A stretch of 64,000 nucleotides of DNA from Lepidodermella squamata (Eukaryota; Animalia; Gastrotricha). The translations under genes were made by a program, and so were the position numbers. The notes under the pieces were generated by a model. It searched no databases. It saw only the letters and a list, made by a program, of their open reading frames with translations, and had not been told where the DNA came from. Of this stretch, positions 4,390 through 60,201 are shown in pieces. Position 1 is the stretch's first letter; each line of letters opens with the position of its first letter. The DNA lies in NCBI GenBank assembly GCA_047495785.1, contig JBLDXI010000017.1:744001-808000 (forward strand). The letters run 5' to 3'.

Positions 4390-4469
4390 ATTGTATATCA
4401 GAGAAAGCATAAGTTCTAAAAAAAATGATTGTCCCATTTAAATAGTTATCAAAGACAAAATCAATTATA

Positions 4470-6061: not shown

Positions 6062-6323
6062 CATCGGGGTTTTTTCCAGTAAATTTGTTATTTTTCGGTG
6101 AAATCGTGGATAATTGATGGGAGATTCTCTCAGTGAACTCAATAAAAACAATTGGTTTAATTTACTTTGAAAATTTGTATAATTAAAAAGTCGAACATTC
6201 TGTTCGAAAATCATACCTACTGGTTATAAAAGTCGACCTTATTTCCTGGCGATAATCTCGACCTAAGAGCCGTATTTATCGATAATACGGCTTCGAAAGC
6301 AACCTACTATTTCTTCTTCGAAT

Positions 6324-13772: not shown

Positions 13773-16700
13773 ATGATAAGGGCGGAACGTAACGTCGATG
13801 TTGTCATCAATTTTCCAACCTTCGAATCGGGCATCTACAACGAAAATGGCGAACTTCAGCGGTACATTCACGCCGGCAGTGGCCAGAAGGCGGTCGAGGT
13901 GGATGAAGATCATTTCCACAACGAATCAAACGTCTGCGCCGCTTTGCTGTCAGACGACGGCGAGTTGTGCAGTGAAAAGGGGCTCATTTTACCGTTTTGG
14001 GAGCCGACCGATGGCGGTACTAGATTTTTGATAATTTTCGTCTACCTGCTCGCGTTCGCTTACATCTTCATCGGAGTTTCGCTGCTCAGCGGCCGCGTTA
14101 TGATGGCGGTTGAAGTTATCACGTCGAAGTTGAAGGTTGTCTCCATGATTCGGGATAGGAATGGCAAGTTGAAGCCGGTTCAAAAGCCGATATGGTCGGA
14201 TGTTGTCAAAAACTTAACCCTGTACGTCCTCGGCTTTTCAGCGCCTGAAATTCTCATAACACTCGTTGAAATCGCGAAACACGACTTTGAAAAGGTGAGT
14301 GAAAAATTCAGAAAAATCCTTATTTTTTTTATATTATAAATTTTGAAATGGGTTAAAGCAAAGAACGGTGAGTTGAATTGGGTTGATTTTTTTCTATTCA
14401 CTTTGACTGCTGTGGGAATTTTTTTTCACAAAATCGCTTTTCGAACACTTGATTTCGGGGTGTTAATTTTGTTGCTCACCTTTAATAAGCCTTTCGTCCC
14501 TTTTTCGAATTTTAGGCTGATTTAGGTCCGGAGACGATTGTCGGCAGTCGCGCTTACCATTTATTCGTTATTACGGCAATATGCATTGTTTCGGTGCCGC
14601 GGAATGAGGTCAAGCGAGTTCGCCGATTGCGCGTCTACATCATTACGTCATTTTGGTCAATTTTCGCGTATCTTTGGATTTATCTCATCATTGCGCTATC
14701 AAGCCGGGAAATTATCGAGATTTGGGGTAAGATATTTTTATACTCCTCAACAGCATTACATTTCGAGTGAATATTTGATTTATTTCCCGTATTTGATCAA
14801 TATATATTTGATATATATTTCCGATAGTTATAGCTTCACGGGCTACTACAATTTCAACATTGAAATTTAAATGGAAACATTTGAAAATTAGTTTTTGGGG
14901 AAACCCTGGGCTAGAAGCTCTTTCAAAGTGGCTTCCTTGACCTCTTGTATCGGGAAAATCACTGATTTGTAAGATCGATACCTTGAATCGATATCAGATC
15001 TGCAGGCTGAAGTACAGCGTGCCCATAATTTGTGCACCATTTTGTAATTTCGAAATTTTTTAAGGAAATTCAACTAATTTTTTGAATTTTTGCCCACTCG
15101 GGGAATCGGGAATCTTCCATCCTTTATCCACGATTTTACCGAAGAAATTGAAAATTTACCGGAGAATACTCTGAATTCCCCGATTGTAACTGGTTCGGTA
15201 ATTTTCGGTTTTTACCTGGTTAGATCAAATTCCTTCGGATTTTTGTAATCCGATCCACAAGGGACATGACTTCCCCTCTCATTTCAGAGGTTCTGATCCC
15301 TTTTCGCGACGATTCCTTTGTTTGCGTTACTTATGGGACACGCTGTATAATTCGAGGAGATCTATCGGTAAATAAAATGATCGAGATACTAAGGAAGACG
15401 TTAATATAGAAAAACCCACTTCTATTGGAGAAATTAAGGCCATTTTTGAATTTTTGAATTTTTTACCATTTAATTTCGATTTATTTTGTATTTTTCAGAG
15501 GCACTGCTAACATTTTCATTCTATCCCATCGTTGTAATAACGGCTTGGCTATTCGAGCGATTTAACATTTTCAAGAGAAGAAAAAGGCCACCGCCAACTA
15601 AGCGAACGAAAGCCTCCTTGACGCGGCAAAAAACCATCCGAAAACGAGTTGGAAACAGCCCGTCGCGAAGCAGCCGTTCGACGGTTCGAGGCCCCAGCCG
15701 CGGTTCAAGTTCTCACGTGTTCACGCAGGCTGATGGCAGTATTTCCATGAGCCAGCTACAACCGATGCAACAACAACAAATAGCTGGGCTGAATTTGATA
15801 GTCAATAGTTCGAGCTTCAATAGCACAAATAATCAATTGAGCCCGAATAACAACGGCTCGAGTTTGCCGCCCTTGCTTGCCGGTCAAGCGGATCCGTTGC
15901 TGTTGAAAGAGAACGCGTTTTTTCGCAACGGGAGTGCGGGCGACCTTCAGCAGTACCGCAGCAATGAAGACACCTTGGAAGATGGCTGCGAGAATACCGA
16001 TCACGAAGAGCACGATGACGAAAATACAGACGGGGATGAAGAGGCGGTTGCCTCGCCAGAAACGGTATGAAATATACAAATTAGGAATTTTTTAATTTAG
16101 GATTACATTTTAAAAAAATTAAAAATTTTTGAAAAATTTCAATTTTAATTTTTTAAATTAGGATTAAATTTTAATTTCATTTTATTTTTTTTTAAATTTA
16201 GGAACAAAAAGCAGCTCGTGAGCTGTTGTGGCTGAGGTTGAAAGCTTTGAAGGACCGATTTCCTGGCCGGTCCCAGATCGAGTTGGAAACAATGGCGGGT
16301 AAGTTGGCCTATTTCTATCGATCCCCAATCAGCTTCGAAAATTAGATGTTCACGTTGTTATCAAAAATTATAAAAAAACAATGTGTTTTGCTCAGTTATG
16401 GGTTCGTTTTATGAGCTCCCTTAGACAATTAGACCGTGTCAAACTTTTCACTATGCACTTATTTCTATTAGAATGTCAACTTATTAGGAACCCGGCATGT
16501 AGATTTCCACAGAATTATGGGGAGAAAATCGCTGAAAAGAATTCATGAAAAAATCTGCTTCAAAATAAGCCTTGAAACGCCAAATTTCCCAAGGATAATT
16601 TTATTTCCTTACTAGGGGAAAATGTAAGGTAATTGAAATTACTTTTAGGATCTCCTTAAAAATAGGTAGTTCTAGCCGCATTTCAAATTTCAAAATTTGT

Positions 16701-19700
16701 CGAATTTTAAAATTCGATATTACCAACTATAATTAATTCTATCAATAGCGACCTTTTTTGGTTCCTTTTTCTCGGCCTTATTCCTCCGGCTAAAATACCC
16801 CTTGAAGCACCGATGGAAATTGGGCCATAAAATCGAATTTTTTTGACCTGTAAACCTAATCAGACTCACGTTTTTTTGCCTGCAGAGATGAGCTATCTTC
16901 ATGAGATGCCGAAAAATCAATCCTACTATCGCATAATGACGACAAGGGCTTTCACTGGTGAAGGCGACGTGATAACTCGTGATAAAATTCGCGCTAAACT
17001 GGTATGTCCCAAAAATTGAAATTTTTCGTAAACAAAAAATGTCCCAATATAATTCTGCTTAAAATCGCTTAAATAAAAACCATTTTTTTTCTCGCAGCCT
17101 TTTCTATTAGTAGAAATTAGCAATATTTTTCCCCGTAAATTATTATTACCGGATGCCGCTTCCACTAAAAAATTGTTAATTGTGAAAACATGATCCTTAT
17201 AGCTAGTTGGCATTGCTGCTCCGGAGGTGAGTCTTGCATCGCGACTCTTACAAATAGTTCGTTTTGTTTATAGCTTTAATTTTCACACTGACAAAGCATG
17301 ATTTTTTAGTTGATTTAAAATCTAATTATTATCGCTTTCCACACGTGTATTATTATTATTATTAACAGCCTCAGCTTTTTAGCCGGTGATTTTCCTAGCT
17401 TCTTCTCTCTTAGTAGCTTAAAGGCGTCACGCACCGAGTGAAAATTCTACTAATTTTTTCATTCGATTTTAGTTTAAATTTAATTTGAATATTTTTCTGA
17501 TTTTGCAATGCTCGAAACTTATTTTTTCGGTTGCGTTAATTACAGGTTAAAGAGTCGAAGGTGATTGAGAAGCGAAGGCGGCTTCGAGTTGGCGAACAAC
17601 GCGTTTTTTTCTGCCCTTCGCATTACGTTGTAGTCGAATGTGAACCCTTCGTCGAGGTCAAGGTCATGCGCGAAGGCGCAATTTACCTCCCAATCGAAGT
17701 CTCTTACGAAACCTACGATGGTTAGTTTTAATTGAATTTTTGAATATTTCTTTAAAAATTTGAACAATTTAGGAACTGCTTCGGCTGGTGATGACTATAT
17801 AGCTACCTCAGGGAAACTCATTTTCGAAGCCAACGAAACTACGAAATCCATCGCTATACCTATAATCGACGATGAAGAGTACGAAGATGACGAGTATTTC
17901 TTCGTGAAAATCACCTCGGCCAACTACATCGAAGTGCCCGATGCTATTCCTGAAGAGGACGTTAATGCAGCTAGTTGTGTTGGCGGCGATAAGTCGCTGA
18001 AACCTTCACCGGCCCGGGCGGCTGTGAAAAGGGCGAAGAGTAGTGTTGGCAAGAGGCGCGTGATTGAAATCGGCCCGCAGACTGAGGCTTGCGTGACGAT
18101 TTTGGACGATGACCACTGCGGGGTGTTCACATTTCCAGGCGCTAGCATCGTAGTTCCTGATAACTTAAAATACGTAAGGAAATTTATCTTAAAAGTTTCA
18201 AAATTGGAAAATTGATATTACCAATGACAGTAGAACATTTTTTGAAATTTTGAGATTAAATTTGGTCTTACTAATTTTTTGAAATTTTTGAAATTTAAAA
18301 ATTTAAATTATACGAATCAGAAAAAATTCGAAATTTTAAATGTAGGCCAATTGATTTTATTAGGAAACCAGACTGGATTTTTCAGCAAAACCTTAAATTT
18401 GCATTTTCTTCCTAATTAAGGCGGAGGTAAAGGTCATGAGAACAATGGGCGCTCATGGTCGAATTGTCGTGCCCTTCGAGTTGACCCCGGTGAATGCGAT
18501 ACTCGACCGCGACTACCAAGAACCAACGACTTACTCTATCACATTCGAACACCGCGAATTAGAGTAAATTTCCGCCAATTCTCCTATTTTTTTCCAATTT
18601 TTATTCACCGAATTTTTAGAAAAACAATAAAAGTAGGAATTATCGATAGACAACGCGCCGGTGATGACTCGATATTCACTCTAAGATTGCTGACCCCTAA
18701 CTTGATCGATGGTAATTTTTTGAAAATTTCATAAAATTTCATTAAAATTCCACAATTTTTATAGAAGAGCCACCCGATCGGTCTGAAGGGTTGCCGCGCA
18801 TTGGCGATCAGCCGCTGATAAAAGTGATAATTACCGAAAGTGATGAGATGAAAGAAACGCTCGATCGGTTGCAAACCGTCGGCGAGTTGGGCAATTTATT
18901 TCGAACAACTTGGCGCTCGCAATTCATCGATGCAATAACGCTGCAAACTACGTCATTCGTACAGCAAGACGATGGCGCCGTTTTGGGCGCCAACCGACAG
19001 CCTCAGTGGTACGAATACGTCCTACATGCCCTAACATTGCCTTGGAAAGTGGCCTTTGCCCTCCTACCTCCTACAGGTAAATTTAAATAATTTTCAAAAA
19101 ATTTCAAAATTTTCAATTAAATTATAGGATATATAGTTATAGGACTTCTTTGTGCAATAAATTGAATTTTCAATTTTTTTTTAGGATTACTCGATGGCTG
19201 GCTGACATTTTTGTCCTGCATCGTTGTAGTCGGCTTTATATCGATACTCATCGAAGACCTTAGCGCTCATTTCGGCTGCGTTTGCGGCATAGCCAAGCCT
19301 ATAACTGCCATCACGATAGTCGCTATCGGCACCTCACTACCGGACATGTTCGCATCTAGGGCAGCTGCTGTGCACGAAAAAACCGCCGACGCAGCTCTGG
19401 CACACATTTCAGGCTCTAATGCCGTCAACGTCTACCTCGGTCTCGGTCTCGCTTGGACGGTCGCCTCGCTACATCATCGCTACTGGAAAGGCGCGACTGA
19501 ATACAGACCCACTGTAAGTTCAATATCAGTGGCGAATTTTCTTAATTTATTTGTTCCTAAATTTCAAAAATTTCAAAAATTAAAAAATTTTCAAAAAATT
19601 TCCAGAAATTTCAATAAATTTCAAAATAATTTTATTAAATTTGTTTAACGGGGTATTTTTTAAATTTTCTAATTTTTTGTATTTTTCAAGTGCTTCCCTC

Positions 19701-19918
19701 AACATTTGGCTGCCAACGTGCTCTTATTTTTCGCCTTCTCCATCGCCGGTCTTGCCGTTCTGATTTTTCGCCGCTTCACCCACATGTCCGGTCGAGCGGA
19801 ACTGGGCGGCCCGTTGCCAATGCGACTACTCACCGCCGGCATTCTAGTCCTGCTCTACGTCATCTACATCACTCTCACGATTCTAGTCAACGAAAACATC
19901 ATCAACATCGACGTTTGA
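13773..19918 (+). CDS. NCX/SLC8-like exchanger copy 1 (most divergent, about 13 exons, start uncertain)
   Basis: NLTLYVLGFSAPE; LGPETIVGSRAYHLF (exon 14516-14726); Calx-beta IIDDEEYEDDE and ILDDDHCG; alpha-2 GTSLPD..AHISGSNAVNV; ELGGP. Exons join in frame at the GT-AG sites checked. Confidence 0.88.
14947..15014 (-). repeat. Dispersed repeat fragment, reverse complement of ~2727-2795
   Basis: gtatcgggaaaatcactgatttgtaa...ctgcaggctgaagta versus tacttcagcctgcag...ttacaaatcagtgattttcccgatac. Confidence 0.75.
15015..15345. mobile_element. Complete Tc1/mariner-type MITE in an intron of NCX copy 1
   Basis: TA|CAGCGTGCCCATAA ... TTATGGGACACGCTG|TA, i.e. TIRs plus TA duplication. Inverted relative to the copy at 801-1168. 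Confidence 0.85.
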
Positions 19919-20617: not shown

Positions 20618-22225
20618 ATGGAAGCGTTATCGAGCTCTGAAACCGAAATTTCCGACCATTTTAACGCCAGTTTCAACAACGCCAGCTCGGCCCAGATTGA
20701 GTCTCATTTCAACCTAACGAATTCCCATGAAGAAAACGGCCATGAAACCAGCAGTTCTAGCCATGGTCATCATCAAGTTGGACATGCGAATAATCATTCA
20801 AGCGATAATTACTGCTCGTTATCGCATCATATAATATGCACGAATGGTAAAATTATACCGCTGTGGCAACCGAATCCTATCACCCAATCTGGGCCTGTTC
20901 GAGCTGGCCGGTCGATTGTGCTAATGCTGGGTATGACGTGGCTGTTTTTCGGCGTCTCCGTTATTTCGGATAAATTTGTCGAAGCTATCGAAGTTGTCGT
21001 GTCGCAGAAGAAAAAAGTCCGCGTTGTTTCGCGCGTTACCGGACTCGAGGAGTACCATTACATTCCGATTTGGAACGAAACTGTCGCGCATGTAAGCATT
21101 TAATACAGGATTATGAGACATGACCCAATTTGGGACATAAGCTGTTTCCCTTTCGCACACTATTTTAAATCTCTTTTTACTTTAATTTTGAATTTTTTCA
21201 TAATTTTCCGATGACCCAGTTTCGGACAAAACTTTTCCGGTTATTTTTTGAAGGTTTTAATTTCTGTGAATTTTTAATTTTTTTTCAATTTTTTTGTTGA
21301 CTGGAAAGGGGATTTTTTAGATTTTTTAATTAAATTTTAATTTCATTTAAAAAAAATATGTTACCGTTTTCTAGCTTGCTCTTGCCGTAGTTGGCTCTTG
21401 CTCACCTGAAATTCTGCTAACAACGGTCGAAGTTCTGGCTCATAATTTCGACCTGGGCGAATTAGGACCGGCAACTATTGTCGGATCCGGTGCTTATAAC
21501 CTGTTCATAATTACCGCAATTTGTATCCTGTCGGTCAAAAAAGGCGAATCACGCAAAATCGAAGATATGCACGTATTTTTCGTCACAGGCAAGCCGTCGC
21601 GATTAATTCAAAATCTTAAATTTCAAATTTTTTTATAAAGGTGCTTGGGCAATATTTGCCTATATATGGCTGTATCTTATGATCTCTGTCATTTCTGTCG
21701 GCATTGTCGAAGTTTGGGAAGCACTTCTCACCCTGGCTTTCTTCCCACTGACCATTATTACTAGTTACCTGGCTAATAAACGCTGTTTTGGCTTGCGCGA
21801 GAAACTGAGACGAACAAATCAATCAGTTCACCCGGTTAACGAAACCCCAGATGGCAATAATGGGGAAAATTGTGATAATTCGGCCGAGACTCAAAATGGC
21901 AATTTAGCGAATGGAAACGGGGTGACTGGTGATCATCAAAATCATGACAACGGCAGCTTGGCGCATCAAGCTAACGGGAAAGCTAATCCGGCGACGGCGT
22001 CTGCTATACACATTGCGACCCATTTGAGATTTTTGACGAACAAATCAGCGCGAAATAGAGCGAATAGCAGAAAAATGGCGAATCGCCTGGAGCTTCAGAA
22101 ACAAAATGGTGACGCGCCAACTGAACAAACAGGTAAATTGATTGCTTTAATCCATATTTTGGTATTAAAAATAAAATAAAATAAAAAATAAAAAAAAATA
22201 AAAAGTGTCGCTCCTGGGTGGGCTC

Positions 22226-40825: not shown

Positions 40826-42602
40826 ATGTTCGTGCGCACCACCTTGGTTTTGTTATTAGCTCAGACTTTCGGCCTGAGCCAAGATCTGGACATTACAGCT
40901 TGTAACGATTATGTGGGTACGATTCGCTGTAATTTATGCTGTCTTTTTCTTTCAATTCTGTTGAAATTCAGTTTCGGAGCGAGACGTTATCAAGCATATC
41001 TTCTTGAATTACACGAAGTTAGCGAGGCCGAGGAAGCAAGCGTCAAACCCAGTTAACGTAACGATAGGTTTTCGGCTGTCAGGAATTCAAGACTTTGTAG
41101 GTGACATTATGGATTAAAATCCACGATATTCATCTGTATTTCCCGCAGATTGAACGGCAAAATCTGTTGATCCTGAGTGGATATTTAACACTGGTACCTA
41201 TATTTTTATATCGAGTTCTTCTGAAGAGATGCAAACCTTATATTCCTGTATCAAGGGTTGGTACGATGATTACTTAACTTGGAGCGAGAATTTTCCTCTG
41301 AACTGCATCAACAAAATTTATATCCCATCGGAAGAAATTTGGCTTCCTGATGTGGCACTGGTAAAGCGTTCACCTTTCCCAATACTTTATCTATTGGTAA
41401 TATTAACAGGTCAACAGCCGGTTGGTTATCGAGATTTTATTAGGATAGCTATCACAGCTCAATTTTAGTGGTAATATGTTTACAGTCCTTACAATGCCTG
41501 ATGTTCGAGTTGCGATCAGCAGTAGCGGAAAAGTTGTTCACTACCCAGGCGGGCAATTTGAAGTTTTCTGCGGACTCGATCTGTTTTACTTTCCGTTCGA
41601 TGTTCAAGTAATTTTCAGGCTAACGTATTTCTTAAGAAGTGAACTTTAAAACTTGCAGACATGCCAAATGAATTTTCGCAACTGGAACGTTCCAGAAAAC
41701 CTACAGCATCTCGAGCTATACAATCCACCAGGCGAAGGAAACAATGCTTTCAAAACTTTCGAGTACGTTGAAAGCAAGCTTTGGCATCTGTTGAGTTACG
41801 ATGCTAAAATCAAGTCCTCTCGACCTGTAGAAACCGTAAGAAATTCTGAAAACAGAACTATTACTCTCAAGTTCTGCAATTGCTTTCAAGGCCAGCTTCA
41901 ACATTGTCATTGCGAGACGAACTCTTTACTACTACGTCATTTACATATTTCCAAGTGTGGCAATATCTGTCGTTCATTTATCAACCTTTCTTCTTCCGGT
42001 TTCATTCTTTCCCAATCCACCTTAATTTATGATTGGATCTTCTAATTTTCAGATGGAACAAAATGATAAAATGGCTATGTCGATAACTTGCCTTTTAGCG
42101 TATGCAGTTTTTCAGGTATTAATAGGTAGATTTTAAATTATTATTTAATAATCTCCTCCCTTTTTAGACCACTGTTGCTAACGAGTTACCTAAATCTTCG
42201 GAGACAACGCCTTTACTTTTCCTATACATTACAATCCAACTGGCTTTCATTGCGTTCTCGATCATCACTGAAGGAATAATTACTCTGCTAGTTGGGGTGA
42301 GAATGAAACGCAAAAGCGTACCCCGTTCCATTCAAGTGGCAGCTTTATTTTTCGGATGGCCTCTGCGCGTGAAAGCTGAGGCAAAAAAGCCCCAGAAAAG
42401 CGGAAGAAGCAGCAAATCAAGCTATGGATCTACAAACATCGAGGAAAATACGCTGCACGGCAAGTCTGCGGAAGTTGATTGGTACTACGTTGCCCGTGTT
42501 GTAGACCGATTCATTTTCGTTTTATACCTGGCAGCTACTCTGACTATACCTCTGATTCTCTTCGTTTTTCTTCCTTGGGTTATTTTCAAAAAGTATGATT
42601 GA
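40826..42602 (+). CDS. Divergent Cys-loop pentameric ligand-gated ion channel subunit (nAChR/5-HT3-like, non-alpha), about 10 short exons
   Basis: Signal peptide; NYTKLARP..PVNV; WYDDYLTW; IWLPDVAL; Cys-loop CGLDLFYFPFDVQ|TC; RRTLYY + M1; DKMAMSITCLLAYAVF (M2); ELPKSSETTPLL; DWYYVARVVDR + M4. Confidence 0.9.
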
Positions 42603-46007: not shown

Positions 46008-49000
46008 ATGGGAGTTCAAGAACATCCAGTTGAAGACCATGGGGGTGGAGATCACGGTGATGATCACGGAGATGGCGGAAATTCGACAGGAGAATGCTCG
46101 CCCATCCTAAAAAAATGCACCCATCCCCATTTCCTTCCAGAATGGCAACCAAGTCCTCTGACGCTACCCATAGAAATGCGAGCGGCTCGAGCTGCTATTC
46201 TGTTCGTCAGCCTTTTCTACATCTTTGTCGGTCTTTCATTCATATCAGATAAGTTCAACTCAGCAATCGACGTCATCGTTTCGAGAAAACGAAAAGTCAA
46301 AGTCGTTTCTCGAGTGACTAATACAGAGCAATACGTGAACATCCCTATATGGAACGAATCAGTCGCGCATCTGACTCTGTTCGTTCTGGGCAATTCAGCT
46401 CCGGAAATTCTCCTCTCCGTTATCGAGACGATAATGGGCGGTTTCAAAATCGGCGAACTAGCTCCGATGGTCATTCTAGGCAGCCAATTCAACCTTTTTG
46501 TAACAGGAGGAATCTGCATTCTGGCCGCTTGTCCAAAAGCGAAGAAACAGCACGAACTGCGAAATTTCTTCGTCACGAGTGAGTCCCATTTTAGCCCAGT
46601 GTTCAAGAGTAATTATCGAATTTGTTGAATTCATCTTTCAGCCGGGTCAGGAATAATTGCATACGGCTGGCTGTATGCTGTTCTCAGCGTTATCACTCCT
46701 GGAATAGTCGAGCCCTGGGAGGCCATTCTTACACTATCGTTCTTTCCGGTAACAAGTAAGGCTGAAGTTTTTGATTTTTTTGAGAATTTTTATGATCTCT
46801 GTCTATTTCAAAGTTGTTGTCGCTTACATTGTGGATCGTGAGTTTTTCGGGGCTTTCAAACGGCTGAAGAGACGATATGGGAGCAGACGAGTCGCTGCTG
46901 TGAATAACGAGGTGACCGACCTTACTTCCCACTCTGGCGCGAGTAGATCAACCGATGACTCCGTTGCCATTGAGCTGGGTCGCGATATATCAGTTGTAGA
47001 GGATGACGATCTTACTGAGGTGGAGGCTGCAAGGATCGCCATGGAGAAGCGACAGACTCACTATTTGGCCCTGGTCAAAGAGCTCAGGGTTAAACATCCA
47101 AATTTAACATCAGCGAAAATCAACGAAATGGCTGAGCTGCAAATTATCGACGAAATGCCCAAGACTATGGGTTACTACCGCATGTTGGCATCGAAAGGAA
47201 TGTCTGGCAATGAAAGCATCATAAACATGGACAAACTTCACGCAGCTTTTGAGGTAATATGAGTATTTAAGTACCTGAAATTCAATATAACTCAACGATT
47301 TTCAGCCTTTGGTCCAAAAACGGGTCTTAAAACCCGGCCAGCAAGTTATTTCGTTTGACCCTTGTGAATATCGCGTCATGGAGGATTGTGGCACAATGGA
47401 ATGCAACGTCATTCGGGAAGCTCTGTCAGATAAAACTCTAAAATCAACTGTTCAAGTGAATTATGCAACAAAAGATGGTTTGTTTTCACTTGATAGCTGA
47501 AAGCTGATTTGAGCTCATTATTTACAGGAACCGGGGTATCCGGCAGTGATTACGTGGCAAAAAAGGGAACTTTGATATTCAAGCCCGGCGAGAAGCTGAA
47601 GAAGATTCCCATTAAAATCATTGACGATGACGAATTCAACTTGGATACCCAGTTCTACGTTGAACTATCCGCGCCAATGATCACAACCGGGAAGAGTCCA
47701 AAGCCGACATCATCGCCTGACGTCATAATCGACCCTGATCTCAAGAAGGCAACTATAACAAAAATTGACGACGACCATGCTGGTATTTTCTGCTTTGAGC
47801 ATCCTGAATTATCTTTCGAAGAAGATTGCGGCGAAGCTAAAATCAAAATCGTGAGGAATTCCGGGGCAAAGGGTGTAGTCACCCTACCCTACAAGATCAT
47901 ACCGGAAACGGCAATCCCAAAAGTCCACTTCACTGAGGTCGGCCTGCCTCAAGCAAACAACAAACAAACGACTCAAAGTCAAGTGATAAAATTTCAGGGT
48001 AAACAAACTGAGTAAGTACTTTTTTGCTTGAAATAATGGCGCCATAACCTCGTTGCTCTTTCAAGGCACATTCTGCGTTTCAAACTTGTCAACGAAGGTA
48101 GCTTCTCAAAGAAGGCAATATTCCGCATCGAACTAAGCCCACCAGTCGAGGGCAATGCTAACAATTGGTCCAGCTTGATGAAAACTGTCAGCAAGAATCC
48201 GAAACAGCCACCCACAAAGGAAACCTCCAAAGCAGAGAAAGCTCGACTGGGAGAAGTATCCAGTGTTCGCGTTACAATAACTGAAAATCAAAAACTGAAA
48301 TCTGTTGTCGATCGCATCTCAAGCTTGGACGTAAACGATTTCATCGGCTCATCATCATGGGGACAACAGTTTGTAGACGCTGTCACAGTTCGGCATGATG
48401 CCCATGTCGAAGAGGAGCAAGAAGAAGAGGAAGAACAGGGTGAGAGTTCAGCCCCCGCTAAGCCCAGCAAAGCTGAATACTGCAAGATGTATTTCTTCCA
48501 CATAATCACGTTTTTCTGGAAGATCCTTTTCGCATTCATCCCGCCAACTGGAATGGCCGGCGGATGGGTTACATTCTTCTCTTCTCTGATTTTGGTAGGC
48601 GGTATGATGGCTTTAGCCGCAGATATCGCTATCCAACTCGGCTGCACGATTGGTTTGAAAATCGAAATGACAGCTATTACATTAGTTGCGTTTGGTGTTA
48701 GCCTGCCTGATATATTCGCTAGTAGATTAGCTGCGGTTAAGGAGGAACATGCTGATGCTGCTCTTGGCCATATGATGGGCCGTATTGGTGTCAGCATTTA
48801 CGTAGGATTTGGTCTCAGTTGGACGCTGGCGTCTATCAAACAAGCACTGTCCGGGAACGTGCTGAAAATCCCGGTTAAAGAACTACCTTTCAATATTATT
48901 CTCTTTTTCATATTTGTGGGCGTAGCAGTTTTTGTTTTGCTGATTCGACGACTGCCACCGGTTCGTGGTGAACTCGGTGGGCCGAAACCTGCAGCAATAG

Positions 49001-49089
49001 CGACAGGTGTCTTATTCTTTTCGTTATGGGTGCTTTATATAACACTGACAGCACTTGAGAGCTATTGTGTTCTGAATGTTTCTTTCTAG
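46008..49089 (+). CDS. NCX/SLC8-like exchanger copy 9 (strongly altered ion site)
   Basis: VAHLTLFVLGNSAPE; APMVILGSQFNLF; Calx-beta pair; GVSLPD..GHMMGRIGVSIY. Confidence 0.92.
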
Positions 49090-49835
49090 CGTATTACTAA
49101 TAAATAAATTGATAAAGTAACAAATAATGGGTTCTCATTTATTCAGTAAATAGCTTCCCTCGCTCACTCAAGAGTGTAAATCATAAATCTTGAGAATAGC
49201 GCAAAAAGAACTTCCGGAAATTGCTACTGCCCTAAAGAGGAAAACTGCCCAGTTTCATTGATTATGCGTTCCAATATGTGCATAGTAGGTCGACCTTTTC
49301 GGGAAGTGCAACGAGGATATTCCGCCGACTGTGCATCGATTAGTCGAGCAATTTCAATTTATTTAATCCGATTCACAGTGATTTTTATAGTTCTAATTGT
49401 TGTTATAGCATCTGCAGTAATTATTAGTGTTTTAAAAATAGGAAGTTTGCTCACGAGCACCATGTGTAGGCAAATGACGCAACGCCGTGCATCAAATGCA
49501 TGAATCGATCACCCAGCGGTATTTCGCATTTGATGCGCGCAATGTCTGCCTGCTTGCTGGCCTTGTAGAATTAATAAAAAATGAACAATTATCAAAAGTT
49601 GTGTGTACCTTTGCGTCGACTGGCAGCAAAAAATTAACTCCTAGCAACCGCACTTGCTCGCAGGCAGAAGCAAGCTGCTTTTGTCATCCAAATCGCATCG
49701 ATCAGCGATGTAAAAGCAAACAACCGGGATTCGTTTTGTTTTAATTTTTCGCTCGCTGCTTTTTTGCGTGCTCCTGAGTAGTCATAACAAACATACGACG
49801 ACAAGTACTTTTGGTGATTTTTACATCGTTTTGCC

Positions 49836-52800
49836 ATGGGCGGCGGATCAGCTGCAACAGCTGGTAACGGCACTGTATCGTGTGCAACTATCACTTGCAG
49901 CCATTCAGAGTTTATACCGCAATGGATGCCTTACCCCAACCAAATCTCTGTCGGGGAACGAGTTGGAAGAGCCATCGTATATATCCTCATACTCGCTTAT
50001 CTTTTCATCGGAATGTCAATGGTATCAGACACATTCTGCGCAGCAATCGACCACATCATCACACGGAAGAGGAAGGTGAAAATCACATCTCGACTAACTG
50101 GATCTGTCCAATATGTGCAAATACCCATTTGGAACGAAACAGTGGCTCATCTAACCTTGTTTGTATTGGGCAATGTCGCTCCAGATATCCTACTCACCTT
50201 AATCGAGGTGATACTCAACGACTTTGATCCCGGACATCTTGGTCCTTCTGTGATTATCGGAACCGGTGCGCTTAATCTTTTCTTCATACAAACGGTATGC
50301 ATATGCGTGGTTGAAAAGAATCATGCGAAAAAAGTGGAACACATGCGATTGTACTTCCTAACTAGTAAGTCCCACTTAAATTTCATACTGTGTTTATGAC
50401 CTATTATTTTTTAGCCGGTTGGTTTTTGTTCGGCTATCTATGGCTATATTTTATTTTGGTCCCAATTTCAAATGGAATAATCGAGCCATGGGAATCCTTT
50501 CTGACCCTGTGCTATTTCCCGATGCTCGTCGTCTCTGCATATATTGTCGACCGCAATTTTTTCGGCTGCTGTGCTCGACTGAAGCGGCGAGCTATTAGGA
50601 CAATTTCCCCTTCTCTAAGTAAAGCTACAACAAACGTTTCTGTGATACCCATGCCTGCGCAATCAGTCTCGGATTCAACCACTGAGGTTACAACAGAAGG
50701 ACTGGAAACCCACATGGATCATGAGGATGAATTCGAAGCAGCCCGACAGGTCAGCTATCTTTTTTCTCCCTAGGAATGCTCTTTAAACGTTTTTAATCAA
50801 AATAGGCTTTAGAGAAAAGACAGCATCGCTTCTTGGCACTTCTCAAAGAGATGCGGGCGAAACACCCGAATAAAACTCAGCAGCAAATTCAGGAATTAGC
50901 CGAGCGCGAGCTTATTAAAGAGCTCCCGAAGAGCCCTGGCTATTATCGAATGTTGGCTTCAAAAGGCTTATCAGGTGGTGGTGATATTATCAACAAGGAA
51001 AAACTCAGAATGAAATTTGACGTAAGTCAATTTGGATGGGGGTCAAATTTGTGTCTAATTCCAGGATATCGATTTATAGATAAATAAGAAAAAAGACGTT
51101 CGACTGAGTGACCCAGCAGCTCAGGTCCTGACATGCGACCCTGCCGAATATATCGTGATGGAGGATTGTGGGTCATTCCAAGCAAATGTGACCAGGCTTG
51201 GTAACAACCTGGACAACGTAGTGTCAGTGGATTACGAAACCGAGGACGGCACTGGTGTTGCTGGGAGTGACTATGAAACCGTTAGAGGACGCCTGATATT
51301 CAAAAATGGGGAACACACCAAGCATGTGACAATCAAAATTATCGACGACGATGTATTCAATCTGGATACCGTTTTTTATTTGAAACTTTCCAATCCAGTC
51401 CTAGTTGATCCTGGACCTCACAAAAAACTCGTAATTTCGAGGTTCCGTGTTTCATTCCTAATATTCTTTTATATTACAGATCCCGAAACTATCACTCGAC
51501 CCTGAGGGCAGTAAAGCGAAGATAACAAAAGTTGACGACGACCATGGCGGAATTTTTCACTTCCAGAAGTCAAAAGTCACAATAGAAGAGGATGTTGGTG
51601 TAGCTGCGTTTCATGTTACTCGAAGTTCAGGAGCTAAGGGCTGCGTTGCTGTCCCATTCCATATAGAAGCCGCATCAGCCCAACCCGGTATTCACTTCAT
51701 TCCACCCTCGTCGAACCTAATAATATTCCAAAATCGAGAGACTGAGTAATTTCACCATATCCCTCTTAATCATTGTTAACATTATTCCCTTTCAGAAAAT
51801 TATTGAAGATGAAAGTTATCAATGAAGACCGTCTCGTGAAAAAGGTTCAGTTTGAAATAGAACTGGAGGAACCCTATTTCTATGAGGGCAAATTGGAGCA
51901 GAGCAATGGCTTCCCCCATAAAGCAAAGTTAACAAAACAACAATCAGAACAGTCTGCCGAAGAAAAAATCGAGACAAAAAACCTTGGAAAACCGAAACTT
52001 GGCGAGGACTCGAAAGTCGTTGTGACTATCACAGAGAACACTGGACTTCGAAATGCTGTCGATAACATAGCGAATATCGACCTGAACGATTTAGTGGGTG
52101 CTGTTTCTTGGAAGGCGCAGATTAAGGAGGCTATCGCTCTACCAACTCAGGCCCTTAACGATGAAGATGGAGATGGCGATGTCGACGAAGATGATGCAGT
52201 TGTTAGGAAAACACCATGGAAAGTCTATATATTCCACTATCTAACTCTCTTCTGGAAAATTCTCTTCGCCCTCATCCCTCCGACATGTAAGATTGATCTA
52301 TAAAATATCGCAATTCTCATTAAGAATTTTTGAAATTTTAGATATGCTTGGTGGCTGGTTCTCATTTTTCTGGGCCTTTGGTTACATTGGTGTAATCGTT
52401 GCAATAATTGCCGATATTTCCAAGCAATTGGGCTGTGTCCTTGGCTTGAAAGATGAAATTACAGCTATCACGCTTGTCTCATTTGGCACTAGCTTGCCTG
52501 ATCTTTTCGCAAGTATCCTCGCCGCGAAACGGGAGGAACACGCCGATTCAGCTATTGGTCACGTTAATGGGTCGTGTGGCGTCCTCGTCTTTCTCGGCAT
52601 CGGCATCAGCTGGACGGTGTGCTCGGTGAAAAAAGCCATCGATGGCAAAGAGCTGCGCGTTCAACTGCGTGGTTTTACGTTTTCCATCACAATTTTCCTT
52701 ATATTCGCGCTTCTTACAATCGCTGTGCTTCTGTTCCGCCGACGGCCAGCTGTCGGCGGTGAACTGGGCGGGCCGACGTTCTACCGCGTGTTAACCGGCG

Positions 52801-52880
52801 TTTTCTTCATGTTCTTATGGTTCACTTACGTCTTGTTGAGTGCGTTGTCAAGTTACTGCATAATCAATCCGCTATTTTAA
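49836..52880 (+). CDS. NCX/SLC8-like exchanger copy 10
   Basis: VAHLTLFVLGNVAPD; IIDDDVFNLD; GTSLPD..GHVNGSCGVLVF. Confidence 0.92.
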
Positions 52881-53533
52881 GTGTTTGAACGACACAGCTA
52901 CATAGTTTTGTATATTATGAGTCATTTTTACGCCTGAATATTATAATATAATTCACTTGTGAGTGACGCAACCAATAAATTTAAAACGAATCTATAAGGC
53001 TTCCTGCAACAGACTGAAACAGCCATTATGATGGGAAATCCAGGCGGATGATACCAGGAACCTCTAAGCTTTGTTGCCGAAATTCGTTAGATACGTTATT
53101 GATGATTCTTTGGCATTTCAATCGCACCCGTTTCCTCGACGGAAGTTATATAACATTCGGAAAGAGGCATAGGCCTTTTTACTTGAGTGACCACCACCTT
53201 GAGAACTAGCTAGACAGGATATGCTGTAAGCTGTAAGACGAACACTCTATAGGCTTAAATGAGTGGGATGAAAAGTCCCGAACATACAATTAATCGATCG
53301 AGTACTTGTTGTGAGCAATAAATCGAAGACAATCCTGGTTAAGTGAGACAACTTGCTCAATCCATCGATTTATAGCGGAGCAAGTTGTTGTGGTGCAGCC
53401 GATCGAAAAAGCTCGTTTTGCATCATGAATATTGAATGAAAAAAATCTCCCAGAAAGAAATTAAGCCCAGATATATCAGCATATAACTGTCATTTTCCCA
53501 ATAACTCGAGCGCCACTACTATATTCTTCAGCA

Positions 53534-56500
53534 ATGACCGGAGATTCTCATGGGTAATTTTTGACGAAATATAAATATCAAGTAACATAGTTGTCATCTT
53601 TAACGTCAGAGTCCACTCTTCAGAAACAGCTGAGCATGAAAGCTCCGGTGGCTGTGGCGCTGTCGGTTGCAGCCACACTGAATTCATACCGAATTGGAAC
53701 CCTTCGGCTTATCTCCTGTCGACCGAGGAACGCGTCGGCCGCGCAGTGGTCTACATCACAGTTCTTGCCTACTTATTTCTCGGAATGTCGTTAGTTTCTG
53801 ACAAATTCTGCGCTGCAATTGACCGAATTATCACGCAGAAGCGAAGAGTCAAGATCACATCGAGACTTACAGGAAGCGTGGAGTATGTTCAAATTCCTGT
53901 TTGGAATGAAGCTGTAGCTCATTTGAGCTTGTTCGTTCTGAGCAATGTTGCTCCAGATATTCTGTTATCACTCATTGAAGTTATTACTAATGATTTCAAT
54001 GCTGGAAAATTAGGACCTGAGATCGTCATCGGCTCTGGAGCTATCAACTTGTTCCTAATCCAAACGGTTTGCATTCTTGTCGTTGAGCCGAACAAAGCTA
54101 AACGAGTAGAACATCGAAGGCTCTACTTCCTAACAGGTGATTTGGTTGTAATGAATTCTCAATAGATTAGCATGTTTTTCCCACAGCTGGTTGGTTTCTC
54201 TTCGGATACCTATGGCTATACCTCATCCTGGGACAAATATCTCCTGGAGTGATAGAGCCTTGGGAATCTCTAGTCACCCTATCATATTTCCCACTGCTTG
54301 GTAAGTGGCTGTTTAGAGTGGACTATGTATTCCCTAATCTTTGAATTTTCCAAGTAATTACTGCTTACATCGTTGATCGAAATTTCTTCGGTCTCTGCAA
54401 ACGGCTTCAAGCTAGGTCCGGTGCAGTGAGCCCAGAATCTCACCGCAGTCAGTCAGAAATACAGACAGAAGACCTTGACCACGAGGACGAACTTGAGATC
54501 GCGCGGCGAACCCTTGAACAGCGCCAACTCCGCTTCATCGAGTTAATGAAGGATATGCGGAAAAATCATCCTAATAAAACTCAGCAGCAAATACAAGAGC
54601 TAGCTGAGCAAGAAGTCATCAATGAAATGCCGAAATCACCGGGTTATTATCGAATGCTTGCTTCGAAAGGATTATCAGGAGGTGGGGATGTTATAAACAA
54701 AGAAAAGCTCCGCATGAAATTTGAGGTAAGTAATAATCAGCCAATGCCATAACCACATTAATTTGATCGGCTTAAAAGATGAACAAGGTGAGCGACTCAC
54801 GTTTCAGCGACCCTTCAGTTCAAATAATCGCTTTCGACCCGGCTGAGTACATTGTTATGGAGGACTGTGGATCATTCAACGCTCACGTTACACGGCAAGG
54901 AAAAAATCTCGATAACGTTGTCGCGGTGGACTACTCAACCGAAGACGGTAAGAAAAACCGAATTGCTGAGTCGAAGTCACCAGGCCTTTACATCTCCGCT
55001 AGGTACTGGAATTGCGGGCAGTGATTACGAGGCAGCTAGCGGGCAGTTGTTTTTTGAAAAAGGAGAATCGTTGAAACATATCACGATCAAAATCATTGAC
55101 GACGATTTTTTCAACGTTGATACGGTCTTCTATTTAAAGCTGTCTAATCCTACTGTTGTTGACTCAGGTGTTAACAAGAAAATTGTGAGTTGCACTTTCC
55201 AGCTTTGCATTTATCTAACACTTACTTCAAAATCTAGACACCATGGGTTTCGCTAGACAAAGAAGCAATGAAAGCTAGAATTGTTAAAGTGGATGACGAT
55301 ACGGGTGGTATTTTCAAGTTCCCAAAGCCTACCATGGTAATTGAAGAACATGTCGGAACGGCTGTTTTAAAAATTTCCAGAAATTCTGGTGCCAAAGGGA
55401 CGGTAGCTGTTCCTTTCAAAATTATACCAGGTACGGCTCTGCCGGGCGAGCATTTTCTACCCCCACGCGAAACTGAAATCGTCTTCGAACACAGGCAGAC
55501 TGAGTAAGCCTTGCCATCACTATAAGCACATTAAAGTTGGCCTATTTACATTTAGGAATTCCATTCATGTCGGAATTATTAATGAAGATAAACTGGCCAA
55601 AAAAGTTGAATTCGCCATCGAGCTGGGAGAGCCTTACTTCTTAGAAACAGGCATTGTTCAGAAAGTTAAAGAAGGTGCGTTGCGTAATCGTCAAGCTAGA
55701 GGCGGAGATAAGGTTATTGACGTGAAAAACCTTGGCAAACCGAAACTGGGAGATGAGCCTAAGCTTATGGTTACCATCTCTGAAAACAGCAATCTTCGAC
55801 ACGCCGTAGATAACATTGCGAACATTGACATGAATGAACTAGTAGGGGCTGTTTCTTGGAAGGCGCAATTTATTGAGGCAGTCACACTTCCTAAAGCGAC
55901 AGTGAATACAGATGAGGACGACGATAGTTCGGCAAGCAAGCGGCCTCCAATCAAGGCCTACATCTTTCACTTTTTAACCCTTTTCTGGAAAGTTGCTTTT
56001 GCCTTCATCCCTCCGACACGTAAGTCCTGTCTAAACAAATTAACACTCTTCTTATCACATATTTATTTTAGACATTTTGAAAGGTTGGGCTTCTTTCCTC
56101 GTTGCCTTCATTTTCATCGGAGTTATAATTGCTATTATCGCCGATATTTCAAAGCAGCTTGGATGCTGCTTAGGCCTACGTGATGAAATCACTGCAATCA
56201 CTCTCGTCTCATTCGGAACCGGCTTGCCTGATTTATTCGCTAGCATTTTAGCCGCAAAGCGGGAAGAAACAGCCGACGAGGCTATAGGTCACGTCAATGG
56301 ATCCTGCGCAGTTTTGGTTTTTCTCGGTATCGGTTTGAGCTGGACAGTTTGTTCGTTCAAGCACGCCATCGACGGCAACGAGATGAGGATACAACTACGA
56401 GGCTTTTCGTTCTCAATAACGGTTTTCTTGACCTTCGCCGTTTTAGCTATAATAGTTCTACAGCTGCGACGGCTTGCGCCAGTTAACGGCGAATTGGGAG

Positions 56501-56610
56501 GATCCACACTGTTTCGCATAATTACGGCGATTTTCTTTGTATCGCTTTGGGTTATTTACGTCACTCTGAGTGCACTTTCAAACAATTGCACCATAAATCC
56601 ACCGTTTTAG
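53534..56610 (+). CDS. NCX/SLC8-like exchanger copy 11 (short first exon MTGDSHG)
   Basis: ATG 53534 splices in frame to VHSSETAEHES..CGAVGCSHTEFIPNW; VAHLSLFVLSNVAPD; GTGLPD..GHVNGSCAVLVF. Confidence 0.9.
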
Positions 56611-57195: not shown

Positions 57196-60100
57196 ATGGC
57201 TGGCGATTACTATGAGGGGCTCAGAGAAGAAGTCCAGCCAACGAAAAGCCAACGGTATGAGAATGCCACATCGGAACCATCCGTTTACCCAGAATCTCGA
57301 GGTGACATTCACAGCCATACCGATAGTCACGATTTCAACGTTTCAAGCTACAATCACAGCTCAAAAACGAGTCACAGTGAACATGACCATTGCTCTGTTA
57401 CTGGCGATTGTGAAGCCGGTCTATTGATCCCAAGCTGGCAGCCTCCTCCTAATCAGATATCAGTAGAAGAGCGAGCTGGTCGAGCTATTCTTTACATAAT
57501 TTGCATGGCCTACCTTTTTCTAGGCGTCTCAATCGTCGCCGATAAATTTGTTACTGCTATCGAAGTTATCGTCTCGAAGACACGAAAAGTAGAGGTCGTC
57601 TCCAGGACGACTGGTCGGAAAACGTATGTTCGGATCCCTATCTGGAATGAAACTGTAGCACATCTGACGTTATTTGTCTTGGGTAACTGCGCTCCTGAAA
57701 TTCTGCTGACAGCTATCGAAGTAATAAATCGTGATTTCAAGGAAGGCGAACTTGGGCCAGGTTTTTCCCTAAGAGCGCATTTGAGAAAATTATTCATTTT
57801 TCAATTTACAGGAGCTATCATCGGATCTGGCGCTTACAACTTGCTAGTAATAACTGGAATATGCTGTCTATCTGTTCCACAAGGCCGAGTTTTGCGACTG
57901 CATGAACTGAGAATCTTCTTTGTAACCGGTAATAAGCCCGCAAAGCTCCAGCTAATCAATTAATTTTGTGAATTAAACATTTCTAGCTGCATGGATGATT
58001 TTCGCTTATCTATGGGTCTACATTATAACAATAGTTTCCACGAAGGGAGTCGTAGAAGTTTGGGAGGCAGTTACAACGCTGTTTTTCTTTCCGCTATGCG
58101 TTACATCCGCCTACGTAGCAGACAAGCGATGTTTTGGAATTTTCAAACGAAATCGAGTCGCTCCTGACGCTGAAACTGATGTTGAAAAGGCTCAAAGTGC
58201 CTTGGAAATTCGTGAACAGCGGTTTCTTTCTATTTTAGCCCAAGTGAAGAAGAAACATCCAAATCTGAGTATGGCAGAAAAGCGGGAGAGAGCAGAAATG
58301 GAGCTATTGAGAGAGGGCCCAAAGAATCTAAATTACTACAGAATGGAAGCCGGAAAACGAGTTGCTGGCGGCAGTGTAATCAATAGAGAAAAGCTTCGCG
58401 AAAAAATAGCGGTGAGTTAATATGATTGATCCTCCAAAGTCGGCCTTGAACTTCTCCTAGGCTGATGAAAATTCTCGAGACAAATTCAACGATCCATCCA
58501 TTCAAGAAATCGGATTCGATCCAACTGATTATTCTGTAATGGAGAATGCAGGAACGTTAATGCTTCACGTCGTCCGCCGAGGTGCTGATCTGAACAACTC
58601 CATCTCCGTAGACTTTAAAACCGTCGATGGGACAGGCAAAGCTGGCTTCGATTACTATCAGTCGGTGGGCACTCTAGTATTCAATAATAAAGAGTGTGGC
58701 AAATTGATTTCCATTAAAATCATTGACGATGACGAATTCAACATGGATACGCAATTCTACCTAGTTCTCGAAAATCCCAAACCGATAATTCCAAAAGGAG
58801 CATCACAGGCTGTAGCTGTAAGTTATGCATTCAAATTACAGGTTAATATTGTGTCTTGGATATAGGCCAAACTTAACGGATTGCAACTTCGAATCAAAGA
58901 TACAGGGACAGCAACGGTCAACAAACTAGATGATGATCAAGGTGGAATTTTTTCTTTCGATGCAGACGAAACTACCGTTGATGAAGGTTGTGGTTATGCA
59001 AACATTAGAATCACGAGAAGCGGTGGTGCAAAGGGAGACGTCTCCTTGCCTGTGAGTTTCTTGCCACTGACCGCCAAAAAGGGACTACATTACGACGATG
59101 CTGGAACTCAAAGCTTGCTATTTGTAAACGGCTGCGTTGAGTGAGTCTTCTAAAACTTGAAATTCAACCTTGGAGTTTTACATTGCTATAATCAGAAATA
59201 TTCTTCGGATCAAAATCATCGACGAAGGCTCGCTGAATTCAAAATCTGCGGTTCTCAACTTGCAGTTAGGCGAGCCCGAATGGGTAACCCCTGACAGCGA
59301 GCATGTTGGAGCCAAGCTGCGCAAAAGACGCTCCACGGCAGACATGGGAACTTCGAAACTGGGAAAGCCCCGTCTTGGGGATATCAAGTCTATTAAAATA
59401 ACAATAACTGAGGACCCTGAATTAGGAAGAGCAGTTGCTGATTTAGCAAACACCGAGCTGGGCAGTCTCGTCGGCTCTGCATCTTGGGCGGGGCAATTTC
59501 GAGAGGCGGTCACTCTACCAAAAATCGAAACCTGCGATGAAGTTGAGGAGATTGAAAATGGTAACAAATCCCGCTCTTCGTCAGGAGTGAAATGCCGCAA
59601 TGTTCTTCACTTCTTGACATTATTTTGGAAAATTGTATTTGCCTTCATACCACCACCCAGTATCGGCCAAGGCTGGCCCGCGTTTTTCGGTTGTTTAGCT
59701 GCAATTGGTCTGCTAATAGCTTTAGTTGGGGATTTCGCCAGCTATCTAGGCTGCACTGTTGGCTTGAAAGATGAACTAACCGCTATCACTTTTGTATCTC
59801 TTGGCGCTAGCTTGCCGGACACTTTCGCCTCTAGAATAGCTGCTATGAAGGAAGACACAGCCGATGCAGCCATCGGGCATGTAACTGGCGCTTGTGCTGT
59901 CAATATTTTTCTCGGAATTGGCATAGCCTGGAGCTTGGGTGCGTTCTATCAAACGGCTGTGAATGGCGCTGATGGCCTTACGATAGAACCTGGCACCCTA
60001 TCTTTCAGCTTGACGCTGTTTTTCTCCCTCGCCTCTGCTGCTGTTATCATTCTTCTACTCAGGAGGTTACCTCCTGTACGTGGCGAGCTAGGGGGAAAAC

Positions 60101-60201
60101 AGCCCGTTCGTCTATTAACTACGCTAGTTTTGTGGTTTTTATGGATCTTGTACGTCGTGTTGTCTGCGTTAGACAGTTATTGCGTAATTCAAACTTTTTA
60201 G
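57196..60201 (+). CDS. NCX/SLC8-like exchanger copy 12
   Basis: VAHLTLFVLGNCAPE; IIDDDEFNMD; KLDDDQGG; GASLPD..GHVTGACAVNIF. Confidence 0.93.

Follow-up and report, generated by a model that had tools for sequence, protein, structure and literature searches.

Copies 9-11 of a gastrotrich NCX array, candidate Ca2+ exchangers with remodelled sodium sites

A stretch of 64,000 nucleotides (nt) from the gastrotrich Lepidodermella squamata (contig JBLDXI010000017.1, positions 744,001 to 808,000, or G000:C17:744001-808000, hereafter the window), part of a 121-Mb genome in 151 contigs, carries twelve tandem genes of the Na+/Ca2+ exchanger (NCX) type, located by tblastn with pieces of the array and all lying on the + strand between about 13.9 kb and 60.2 kb. 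The ninth to eleventh members, copies 9, 10 and 11 (window 46008-56610), are treated here. They are intact, old and selectively maintained NCX paralogues of a lineage-specific array; with moderate confidence we read them as proteins that would work as Ca2+ exchangers with degraded Sint and Smid sites, named after the ion sites of NCX_Mj, and with an altered coupling to the counter-ion. Working Ca2+ exchange is suggested because the two carboxylates (positions E54 and E213) and three of the four helix breakers are kept, and altered coupling because side chains of Sint and Smid are lost or replaced. By architecture and descent the three copies belong to a known family, NCX, and judged from the sequences their Na+-site variation is new within it.

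Spliced models of the three genes (Table 1) were made with a purpose-written protein-to-DNA aligner, after which every junction was inspected and corrected by hand. The references were a canonical public NCX of 882 amino acids (aa; P0001), the array paralogues, and an intronless 869-aa gene of a relative; database searches used single exons, and the joined proteins were used in local scripts only. All 19 introns of copies 9-11 are GT-AG and 49-63 nt long, the frames have no internal stop, and each gene terminates at a stop past the conserved C-terminus. The ATG of copy 11 lies in a first coding exon of 20 nt followed by an intron of 56 nt, placing the start outside the large exon, and the acceptor of intron 2 in copy 10 is ambiguous by 9 nt (50806 or 50815). 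Four candidate introns (48145-48195, 51836-51898, 55656-55712 and 59305-59367) were aligner artefacts in variable loops, which came from the 33%-identical reference P0001 and were dismissed by read-through, splice consensus and paralogue alignment; an acceptor at 48102 in copy 9 was misplaced, the correct one being at 48066. The DNA of the window is eukaryotic, with abundant short GT-AG introns, a G+C content of about 43% and no long open reading frames (ORFs) of prokaryotic style.

In all three copies PF01699 (Pfam Na_Ca_ex) matches the large exons at both ends of the gene above its cut-off, and PF03160 (Calx-beta) matches two stretches in the copy 9 exon 47509-48012. Each copy has ten transmembrane (TM) helices, two alpha repeats, a kept GELGGP region and two Calx-beta domains, both of which can be aligned in all three copies, the second being altered in copy 9. 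The best solved-structure matches of copy 10 exons are NCX1, with E values of 5e-36 and 6e-48 to the human NCX1 structures 8sgi and 8jp0, and exon 51080-51430 aligns with solved NCX1 CBD1 and CBD12 chains. Tandem Calx-beta domains in the loop between TM5 and TM6 are the marker that divides NCX from CCX (PMC4232491). The NCX signature G(S/G)SAPE of alpha-1 is found in none of the three copies, which read GNSAPE, GNVAPD and SNVAPD, and for the alpha-2 signature GTS(I/V/L)PD copy 10 (GTSLPD) fits while copy 9 (GVSLPD) and copy 11 (GTGLPD) have one deviation each. In the acidic cluster of CBD1, copies 9-11 have Asn and Thr where NCX1 has E451 and E454; none of copies 2-12 has an acidic residue in place of E454, and acidic residues are retained in copy 1 and in the canonical NCX gene of the same genome. 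Because the CBD1 acidic residues are reduced in copies 2-12, the Ca2+ regulation of array members may be altered.

The motifs were mapped through alignments to canonical NCX and human NCX1 onto twelve ion-coordinating positions of NCX_Mj, namely A47, T50, S51 and E54 in TM2, S77 and N81 in TM3, A206, T209, S210 and E213 in TM7, and S236 and D240 (equal to N842) in TM8, in which order the pockets are listed in Table 1. The genome has one canonical NCX, at G000:C17:429-435 kb, with the motifs GSSAPE, GSAAYN, GTSLPD and GSNAVN. All motif strings that a first-pass annotation of this DNA had quoted are present in the spliced models at the positions in Table 1. Its reading that the key Glu of alpha-1 becomes Asp in two copies agrees with E54 to Asp in copies 10 and 11, and the last Asn of TM8, which it had described as lost, is Ser in copy 9 and Leu in copies 10 and 11. 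Alignment also bears out the two peculiarities reported for copy 9, GR in place of GS and the shortened TM3 motif GSQFN; two independent MAFFT alignments place a deletion of one residue between the Ser and the Asn. The Arg falls on S236, a ligand of the Na+-specific site Sint (site assignment from PMC5133943). P53, G208, P212 and D213 are intact in all three copies, and G49 in copies 9 and 10 only. Asn at T50 is common to copies 9-11 and copy 12, and Asp54 is confined to copies 10 and 11.

Table 1. Gene models, motifs and pocket residues of copies 9-11, with copies 1 and 12 of the array; positions are those of the window.
Feature	Position	Strand	Description
Copy 9, NCX gene	46008..49089	+	6 coding exons, 934 aa; ATG, stop, five GT-AG introns of 50-63 nt
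Copy 9, coding exons	46008-46578, 46642-46755, 46814-47253, 47306-47477, 47528-48011, 48066-49089	+	
Copy 9, alpha-1 GNSAPE	46389-46406	+	Asn at T50 position
Copy 9, TM3 GSQFN	46479-46493	+	One residue shorter than GS(G/A)AYN
Copy 9, alpha-2 GVSLPD	48694-48711	+	Val at T209 position
Copy 9, TM8 GRIGVS(IY)	48778-48795	+	Arg (CGT) at S236, Ser at D240/N842
Copy 10, NCX gene	49836..52880	+	7 coding exons, 908 aa; six GT-AG introns of 49-58 nt
Copy 10, coding exons	49836-50364, 50415-50749, 50806-51021, 51080-51430, 51480-51745, 51796-52286, 52342-52880	+	
Copy 10, alpha-1 GNVAPD	50169-50186	+	T50 to N, S51 to V, E54 to D
Copy 10, TM3 GTGALN	50259-50276	+	
Copy 10, alpha-2 GTSLPD	52485-52502	+	
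Copy 10, TM8 GSCGVL(VF)	52569-52586	+	Leu at D240/N842
Copy 11, NCX gene	53534..56610	+	9 coding exons, 883 aa; eight GT-AG introns of 50-56 nt
Copy 11, coding exons	53534-53553, 53610-54136, 54187-54300, 54355-54725, 54779-54947, 55003-55184, 55238-55503, 55556-56019, 56072-56610	+	
Copy 11, alpha-1 SNVAPD	53941-53958	+	T50 to N, S51 to V, E54 to D, G49 to S
Copy 11, TM3 GSGAIN	54031-54048	+	
Copy 11, alpha-2 GTGLPD	56215-56232	+	Gly at S210 position
Copy 11, TM8 GSCAVL(VF)	56299-56316	+	Leu at D240/N842
Pocket, canonical animal NCX, own canonical gene included			TM2 A S S E; TM3 S N; TM7 A T S D; TM8 S N
Pocket, copy 9			TM2 V N S E; TM3 S N; TM7 A V S D; TM8 R S
Pocket, copy 10			TM2 V N V D; TM3 T N; TM7 S T S D; TM8 S L
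Pocket, copy 11			TM2 V N V D; TM3 S N; TM7 S T G D; TM8 S L
Copy 1	13938-19792	+	Long introns; clusters with a further NCX array on this contig
Copy 12 (modelled part; context only)	57391..60198	+	GNCAPE, GSGAYN, GASLPD, GACAVN

In NCX_Mj, Sint is formed by A47, T50, S51, E213 and S236, Sext by A206, T209, S210, E54 and S77, Smid by E54, N81, E213 and D240, and SCa by T50 and T209 with E54 and E213 (PMC5133943), T50 giving a backbone carbonyl to Ca2+ (PMC9820601). By transfer of these sites, Ca2+ binding and alternating access would be kept in copies 9-11 through E or D at E54, D at E213, and P53, G208 and P212. The Sint ligands T50 and S51 would be altered in copies 10 and 11, the latter to a non-coordinating Val, with the Smid Asn changed to Leu and E54 shortened to Asp, and in copy 9 the Arg would enter Sint at S236, Sext would lose T209, and the deletion in TM3 would put S77 or N81 out of register. 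The consequence might be one Na+ fewer per cycle, as proposed for an NCLX-like mutant of NCX_Mj, or a changed preference among monovalent ions, while cytosolic control through the large loop would persist. The suggestion of the first-pass annotation that the Arg of copy 9 could act as a built-in, tethered cation is structurally sensible. In other transporter families, relatives that work without Na+ have basic residues where a Na+ site used to be. Among 21 non-canonical NCX paralogues from this genome, D213 is invariant, E54 changes only to Asp, and the Na+-site ligands vary, which is expected if Ca2+ binding has been retained and the coupling tuned.

Substitutions were counted by the NG86 method as proportions of differing nonsynonymous and synonymous sites (pN and pS); synonymous sites are saturated, so that neither dS, the synonymous rate, nor a value of dN/dS can be given. 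The pS is 0.77-0.85 for all pairs of array members, copies 10 and 11 included, and the pN of copies 10 and 11 is 0.23 for the whole gene, 0.15 for TM1-5, 0.19 for TM6-10 and 0.235 for the Calx-beta region. Since the synonymous sites are saturated the duplicates are old, and purifying selection has acted ever since the duplication, most strongly in the membrane core. Derived residues that are the same in copies 10 and 11 are written with different codons, namely Val51 (GTC/GTT), Ser236 (TCG/TCC), Cys237 (TGT/TGC) and Leu240 (CTC/TTG). Relaxed selection, which had been named beforehand as an observation that would speak against remodelled ion sites, is not seen at the gene level, with a pN of 0.15-0.23 against a saturated pS in copies 10 and 11.

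A maximum likelihood tree was made of 38 sequences, namely the twelve window copies, eight other NCX of the same genome, three genes of a relative and 15 public NCX. In it copy 9 is sister to the pair of copies 10 and 11 (100/99), and the three belong with the other members from copy 2 to copy 12 in one group (100/100) that has no resolved branching at its base; the NCX radiation of this genome, copies 9-11 included, is nested among canonical animal NCX at 100/100. The relative, which is uncultured, is known only from metagenome contigs in ENA (L019-L021, G+C 0.40), on which a three-gene NCX array lies between symplekin and a sulfotransferase and comprises a copy-2-like gene, a copy-3-like gene and the intronless 869-aa gene, which is also copy-3-like. 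Its genes are orthologous to copy 2 (100/100) and to copy 3 (100/100), with about 53% identity, and copies 9-11 fall outside both orthologue pairs, which means that their lineage arose before the two species parted. S51 to Cys and S236 to Ala or Gly are common to copies 2-8 and 12 and to the genes of the relative, where position 236 can be read in the intronless gene only; because Cys51 and Ala/Gly236 are found in both, the modified Sint is ancestral to the clade of copies 2-12 and conserved between two species. One intron position is common to copies 9-12 and absent from all other array members, and a clade of these four is compatible with the data in an approximately unbiased (AU) test (p 0.416), for which reasons Asn50 may have arisen once in these four copies.

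The first-pass annotation had further proposed that the ion site of copies 9-11 converges on the motif of CCX and NCLX. The CCX signatures are GNG(A/S)PD in alpha-1 and (G/S)(N/D)SxGD in alpha-2, together with the absence of Calx-beta (PMC4232491). Copy 10 matches GNG(A/S)PD at five of six positions, with Val for Gly, and copies 11 and 9 at four of six each, copy 9 having Ser and Glu in place of the second Gly and the Asp; in none of the three copies does the full alpha-1 signature, the alpha-2 signature or the lack of Calx-beta agree with CCX. The proposal therefore holds for Asn50 and Asp54 of alpha-1, Asp54 being limited to copies 10 and 11, and does not extend to alpha-2, TM3 or TM8, which are not CCX-like. 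Position 50 is occupied by F, T, A, S, G or N across the NCX paralogues of this genome, and because it is so variable part of the likeness may be coincidental. The CCX genes of the same genome have GNGAPD in alpha-1 and WGNSLGD in alpha-2, with flanks quite unlike those of copies 9-11, which lie deep in the NCX tree; the other part of the proposal, a remodelling that took place on an NCX scaffold with Calx-beta and independently of CCX, is thus upheld. Gene conversion from a CCX gene is rejected, as the alpha-1 flanks and the alpha-2 of these genes are unrelated.

A profile of the three alpha-1 exons was compared with 1.84 billion representative proteins (a library clustered at 50% identity) and gave 1809 matches. 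In the best 150 of the 1809, with motifs read by hmmalign, GSSAPE occurs in 122 and GTSAPE in 10, and neither Asn50 nor Asp54 occurs, so that the motifs of copies 9-11 are not put down to chance; an alpha-1 with Asn50/Asp54 is likely to be absent also from public proteins beyond these 150. A word search with exon 1 of copy 10 and a protein-pattern scan of metagenomes found no relative carrying the motif, and a protein atlas gave generic Na_Ca_ex clusters only. The only metagenome match to the degenerate DNA pattern for VLxNVAPDILL is due to chance: it lies on a bacterial contig of high GC content and is read there in an antisense frame.

Pfam Na_Ca_ex is found at 74 places in the genome; the groups described here are drawn from the stretches that were read, which cover the second array and the CCX loci in part. 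This second NCX expansion is larger (C17:462-576 kb plus C19:3.47 Mb, loci L002-L007 and L009) and clusters with copy 1. Its members have His, once Arg, at N81 and, copy 1 excepted, often Ser at D240 and GMGLPD in alpha-2 (T209 to Met, S210 to Gly), and two have Ala at P53. The locus of the canonical NCX is duplicated with identical scores on C17 (L001) and on the 13-kb contig C101 (L008), where it is present in both orientations, and the second occurrence probably reflects either a haplotig that was not collapsed or a duplication made in assembly. The CCX family is expanded too, with at least five to seven loci (L010-L016) that have GNGAPD (once GNGAAD) and WGNSL(G/P)D, and Calx-beta is absent from the one CCX ORF that was tested, of 623 aa at locus L010.

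It is possible, and we put this forward tentatively, that copies 10 and 11 are natural NCX-NCLX hybrids in which three Na+ sites have become two, giving an electroneutral exchange of 2Na+ (or Li+):1Ca2+ under Calx-beta regulation, that copy 9 comes to much the same result along another path, its Arg filling Sint permanently as a tethered cation, and that the genome contains a natural mutational series of Na+ sites around an invariant Ca2+ site. The collapse of a site would come about through Asn50 and Asp54 plus the lost side chains of Ser51 and Asn842, in an NCX of the plasma-membrane type, and the classes of the series would be copies 9-11, the Cys51/Ala236 group of copies 2-8 and 12, and the His81/GMGLPD group of the second array. 

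A different outcome of the same substitutions would be NCX-like proteins in which turnover is abolished by the loss of S51 and N842, the shortened E54 or the pocket Arg of copy 9, and which either bind Ca2+ or regulate as partner proteins, for instance paired with further members of the array, or sense Ca2+ through Calx-beta. Coordinating residues are indeed replaced by Val, by Leu or in copy 9 by a cation, mutations of coordinating residues sharply cut turnover in NCX_Mj (PMC5133943), and the genes are conserved and hence doing something. We nevertheless regard this as unlikely, since in copies 10 and 11 purifying selection is strongest in the TM core (pN 0.15-0.19, against 0.235 in Calx-beta), and a pure scaffold would need neither the carboxylates nor three of four helix breakers, GELGGP and the ten TM helices, all of which are kept. 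The reduced acidic cluster of CBD1, with N and T at the E451 and E454 equivalents, speaks against a specialised Ca2+ sensor, and nothing observed speaks positively for the non-transporting sensor subunit that the first-pass annotation had offered as an alternative. At the other extreme, the substitutions might be tolerated in a functionally ordinary NCX, with backbone carbonyls and water standing in for the side chains, a stoichiometry near 3Na+:1Ca2+, and differences mainly in expression or regulation. What T50 contributes to the Ca2+ site is a backbone carbonyl, and in the revised NCX_Mj model Smid holds water and not an ion, N81A being without effect on exchange rates (PMC5133943, PMC8366772); Glu to Asp is a conservative change, and position 50 is widely variable among the paralogues. 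However, the side chains of S51 and S236 are direct ligands of Sint, for which Val and Arg cannot substitute, and because N50 or D54 occurs in 0 of the 150 nearest representatives, against GSSAPE in 122, these residues are not normally tolerated in a 3Na+:1Ca2+ exchanger, so that an ordinary NCX is rather improbable. That the copies are decaying duplicates, whether pseudogenes of recent origin or artefacts of annotating a degenerate array, is hardly credible: dying copies are frequent in tandem arrays, and copy 9 is fast-evolving, with its deletion in TM3 and its altered second Calx-beta, but frames of 2.65-2.8 kb run unbroken over five to eight canonical introns despite saturated synonymous divergence, and the lineage predates a species split. 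A pseudogene reading was rejected on this ORF integrity and on a pN far below pS.

Several observations weigh against Ca2+ exchangers with altered coupling, the reading that we prefer. Copies 10 and 11 are identical at 10 of the 12 ligand positions, compared with an identity of about 75% in the TM core, an excess that is not significant, three sequences being too few to prove selection on single sites. Between copy 10 and the canonical gene of its own genome 7 of the 12 ligand positions differ, about equal to the TM background, and because of this an earlier spell of relaxed constraint is as compatible with the data as adaptive change. The terminal branch of copy 9 (0.86) is the longest in its clade, and its Arg might neutralise D213 and so abolish Ca2+ binding. 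In mammalian NCX1, transport is reportedly damaged by conservative replacement of the alpha-1 Glu.

Within the array, copies 4-8 have two or three introns each, compared with five to eight in copies 9-12. The copy 2 intron at 21589-21640 is GC-AG (donor GCAAGC), at a conserved phase-1 position after TM5; an internal stop in copy 2 appears only if a GT donor is assumed, and was caused by overlooking this intron. Two segments between copies 7 and 8, at 41229-41465 and 42297-42599, belong to a Cys-loop ligand-gated channel; one is a fragment of Pfam Neur_chan_LBD and the other a TM4-like C-terminus, and they represent either a small gene or a remnant. Upstream of the array are an IIGP-like GTPase ORF (3589-4437, - strand), a reverse-transcriptase fragment (5188-6087, - strand) and a weak C-type-lectin match (9714-10436, + strand). 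An astacin-like ORF and ankyrin genes were also found among the sequences read, and the named proteins closest to a CDK20 fragment of a nearby locus, with 65-69% identity, come from molluscs, annelids, nemerteans and brachiopods, as would suit an invertebrate and probably a spiralian.

For the CaCA superfamily, the debate on selectivity and stoichiometry still rests on one archaeal structure and on engineered mutants, the stoichiometries being 3Na+:1Ca2+ for NCX, 4Na+:1Ca2+ plus 1K+ for NCKX, and probably 2Na+ or 2Li+:1Ca2+ for NCLX (PMC8366772, PMC9820601). The genome of L. squamata supplies naturally selected NCX in which the Ca2+ carboxylates are kept and the ligands of the Na+ sites are varied in discrete, conserved classes, one with both NCLX-type residues of alpha-1 and another with Arg at a Sint ligand position. 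Such paralogues could show which ligands set the number of Na+, the tolerance of Li+ and the electrogenicity in eukaryotic NCX, and if they should behave as ordinary NCX, residues thought to be essential would be dispensable.

Compared with known systems, copies 9-11 have the layout of animal NCX (SLC8; human NCX1, Drosophila CALX), with TM1-5 containing alpha-1, an XIP-like basic stretch, two Calx-beta domains and TM6-10 containing alpha-2, and have in common with them the Asp of alpha-2 and all four Gly/Pro helix breakers except, in copy 11, G49 (Ser). They differ from animal NCX in that Ser51 is gone and Glu54 is Asp in copies 10 and 11, Asn842 is gone in all three, Ser236 is Arg in copy 9, and E451 and E454 of CBD1 are non-acidic in copies 9-11. 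With copies 2-8 and 12 and the orthologues in the relative they have Val47 and a modified Sint in common, and with the array copies also the strand and the short introns; to these they add Asn50 (also in copy 12), Asp54, Val51 and Leu or Ser at 240, and they have Ser or Arg, not Ala, at 236. CCX and NCLX are set apart by the G(T/V)(S/G)LPD of alpha-2, the Calx-beta domains and the NCX phylogeny of copies 9-11. The engineered NCLX_Mj, a mutant of NCX_Mj with N50, D54, N209 and D213, performs voltage-insensitive Na+/Ca2+ or Li+/Ca2+ exchange and is depicted in models with two sites for monovalent ions, a cycle that uses one Na+ less having been proposed for it (PMC8366772, PMC9820601); copies 10 and 11 carry three of these four residues, of which D213 is common to all eukaryotic NCX (PMC9820601). 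The plant vacuolar exchanger MHX, a Mg2+/H+ exchanger that arose from the NCX family, is a precedent for a selectivity changed by a few substitutions in alpha-1, but it has Gln and not Asp at the Glu113 (E54) position (PMC3679957), and its likeness to copies 9-11 is one of analogy only.

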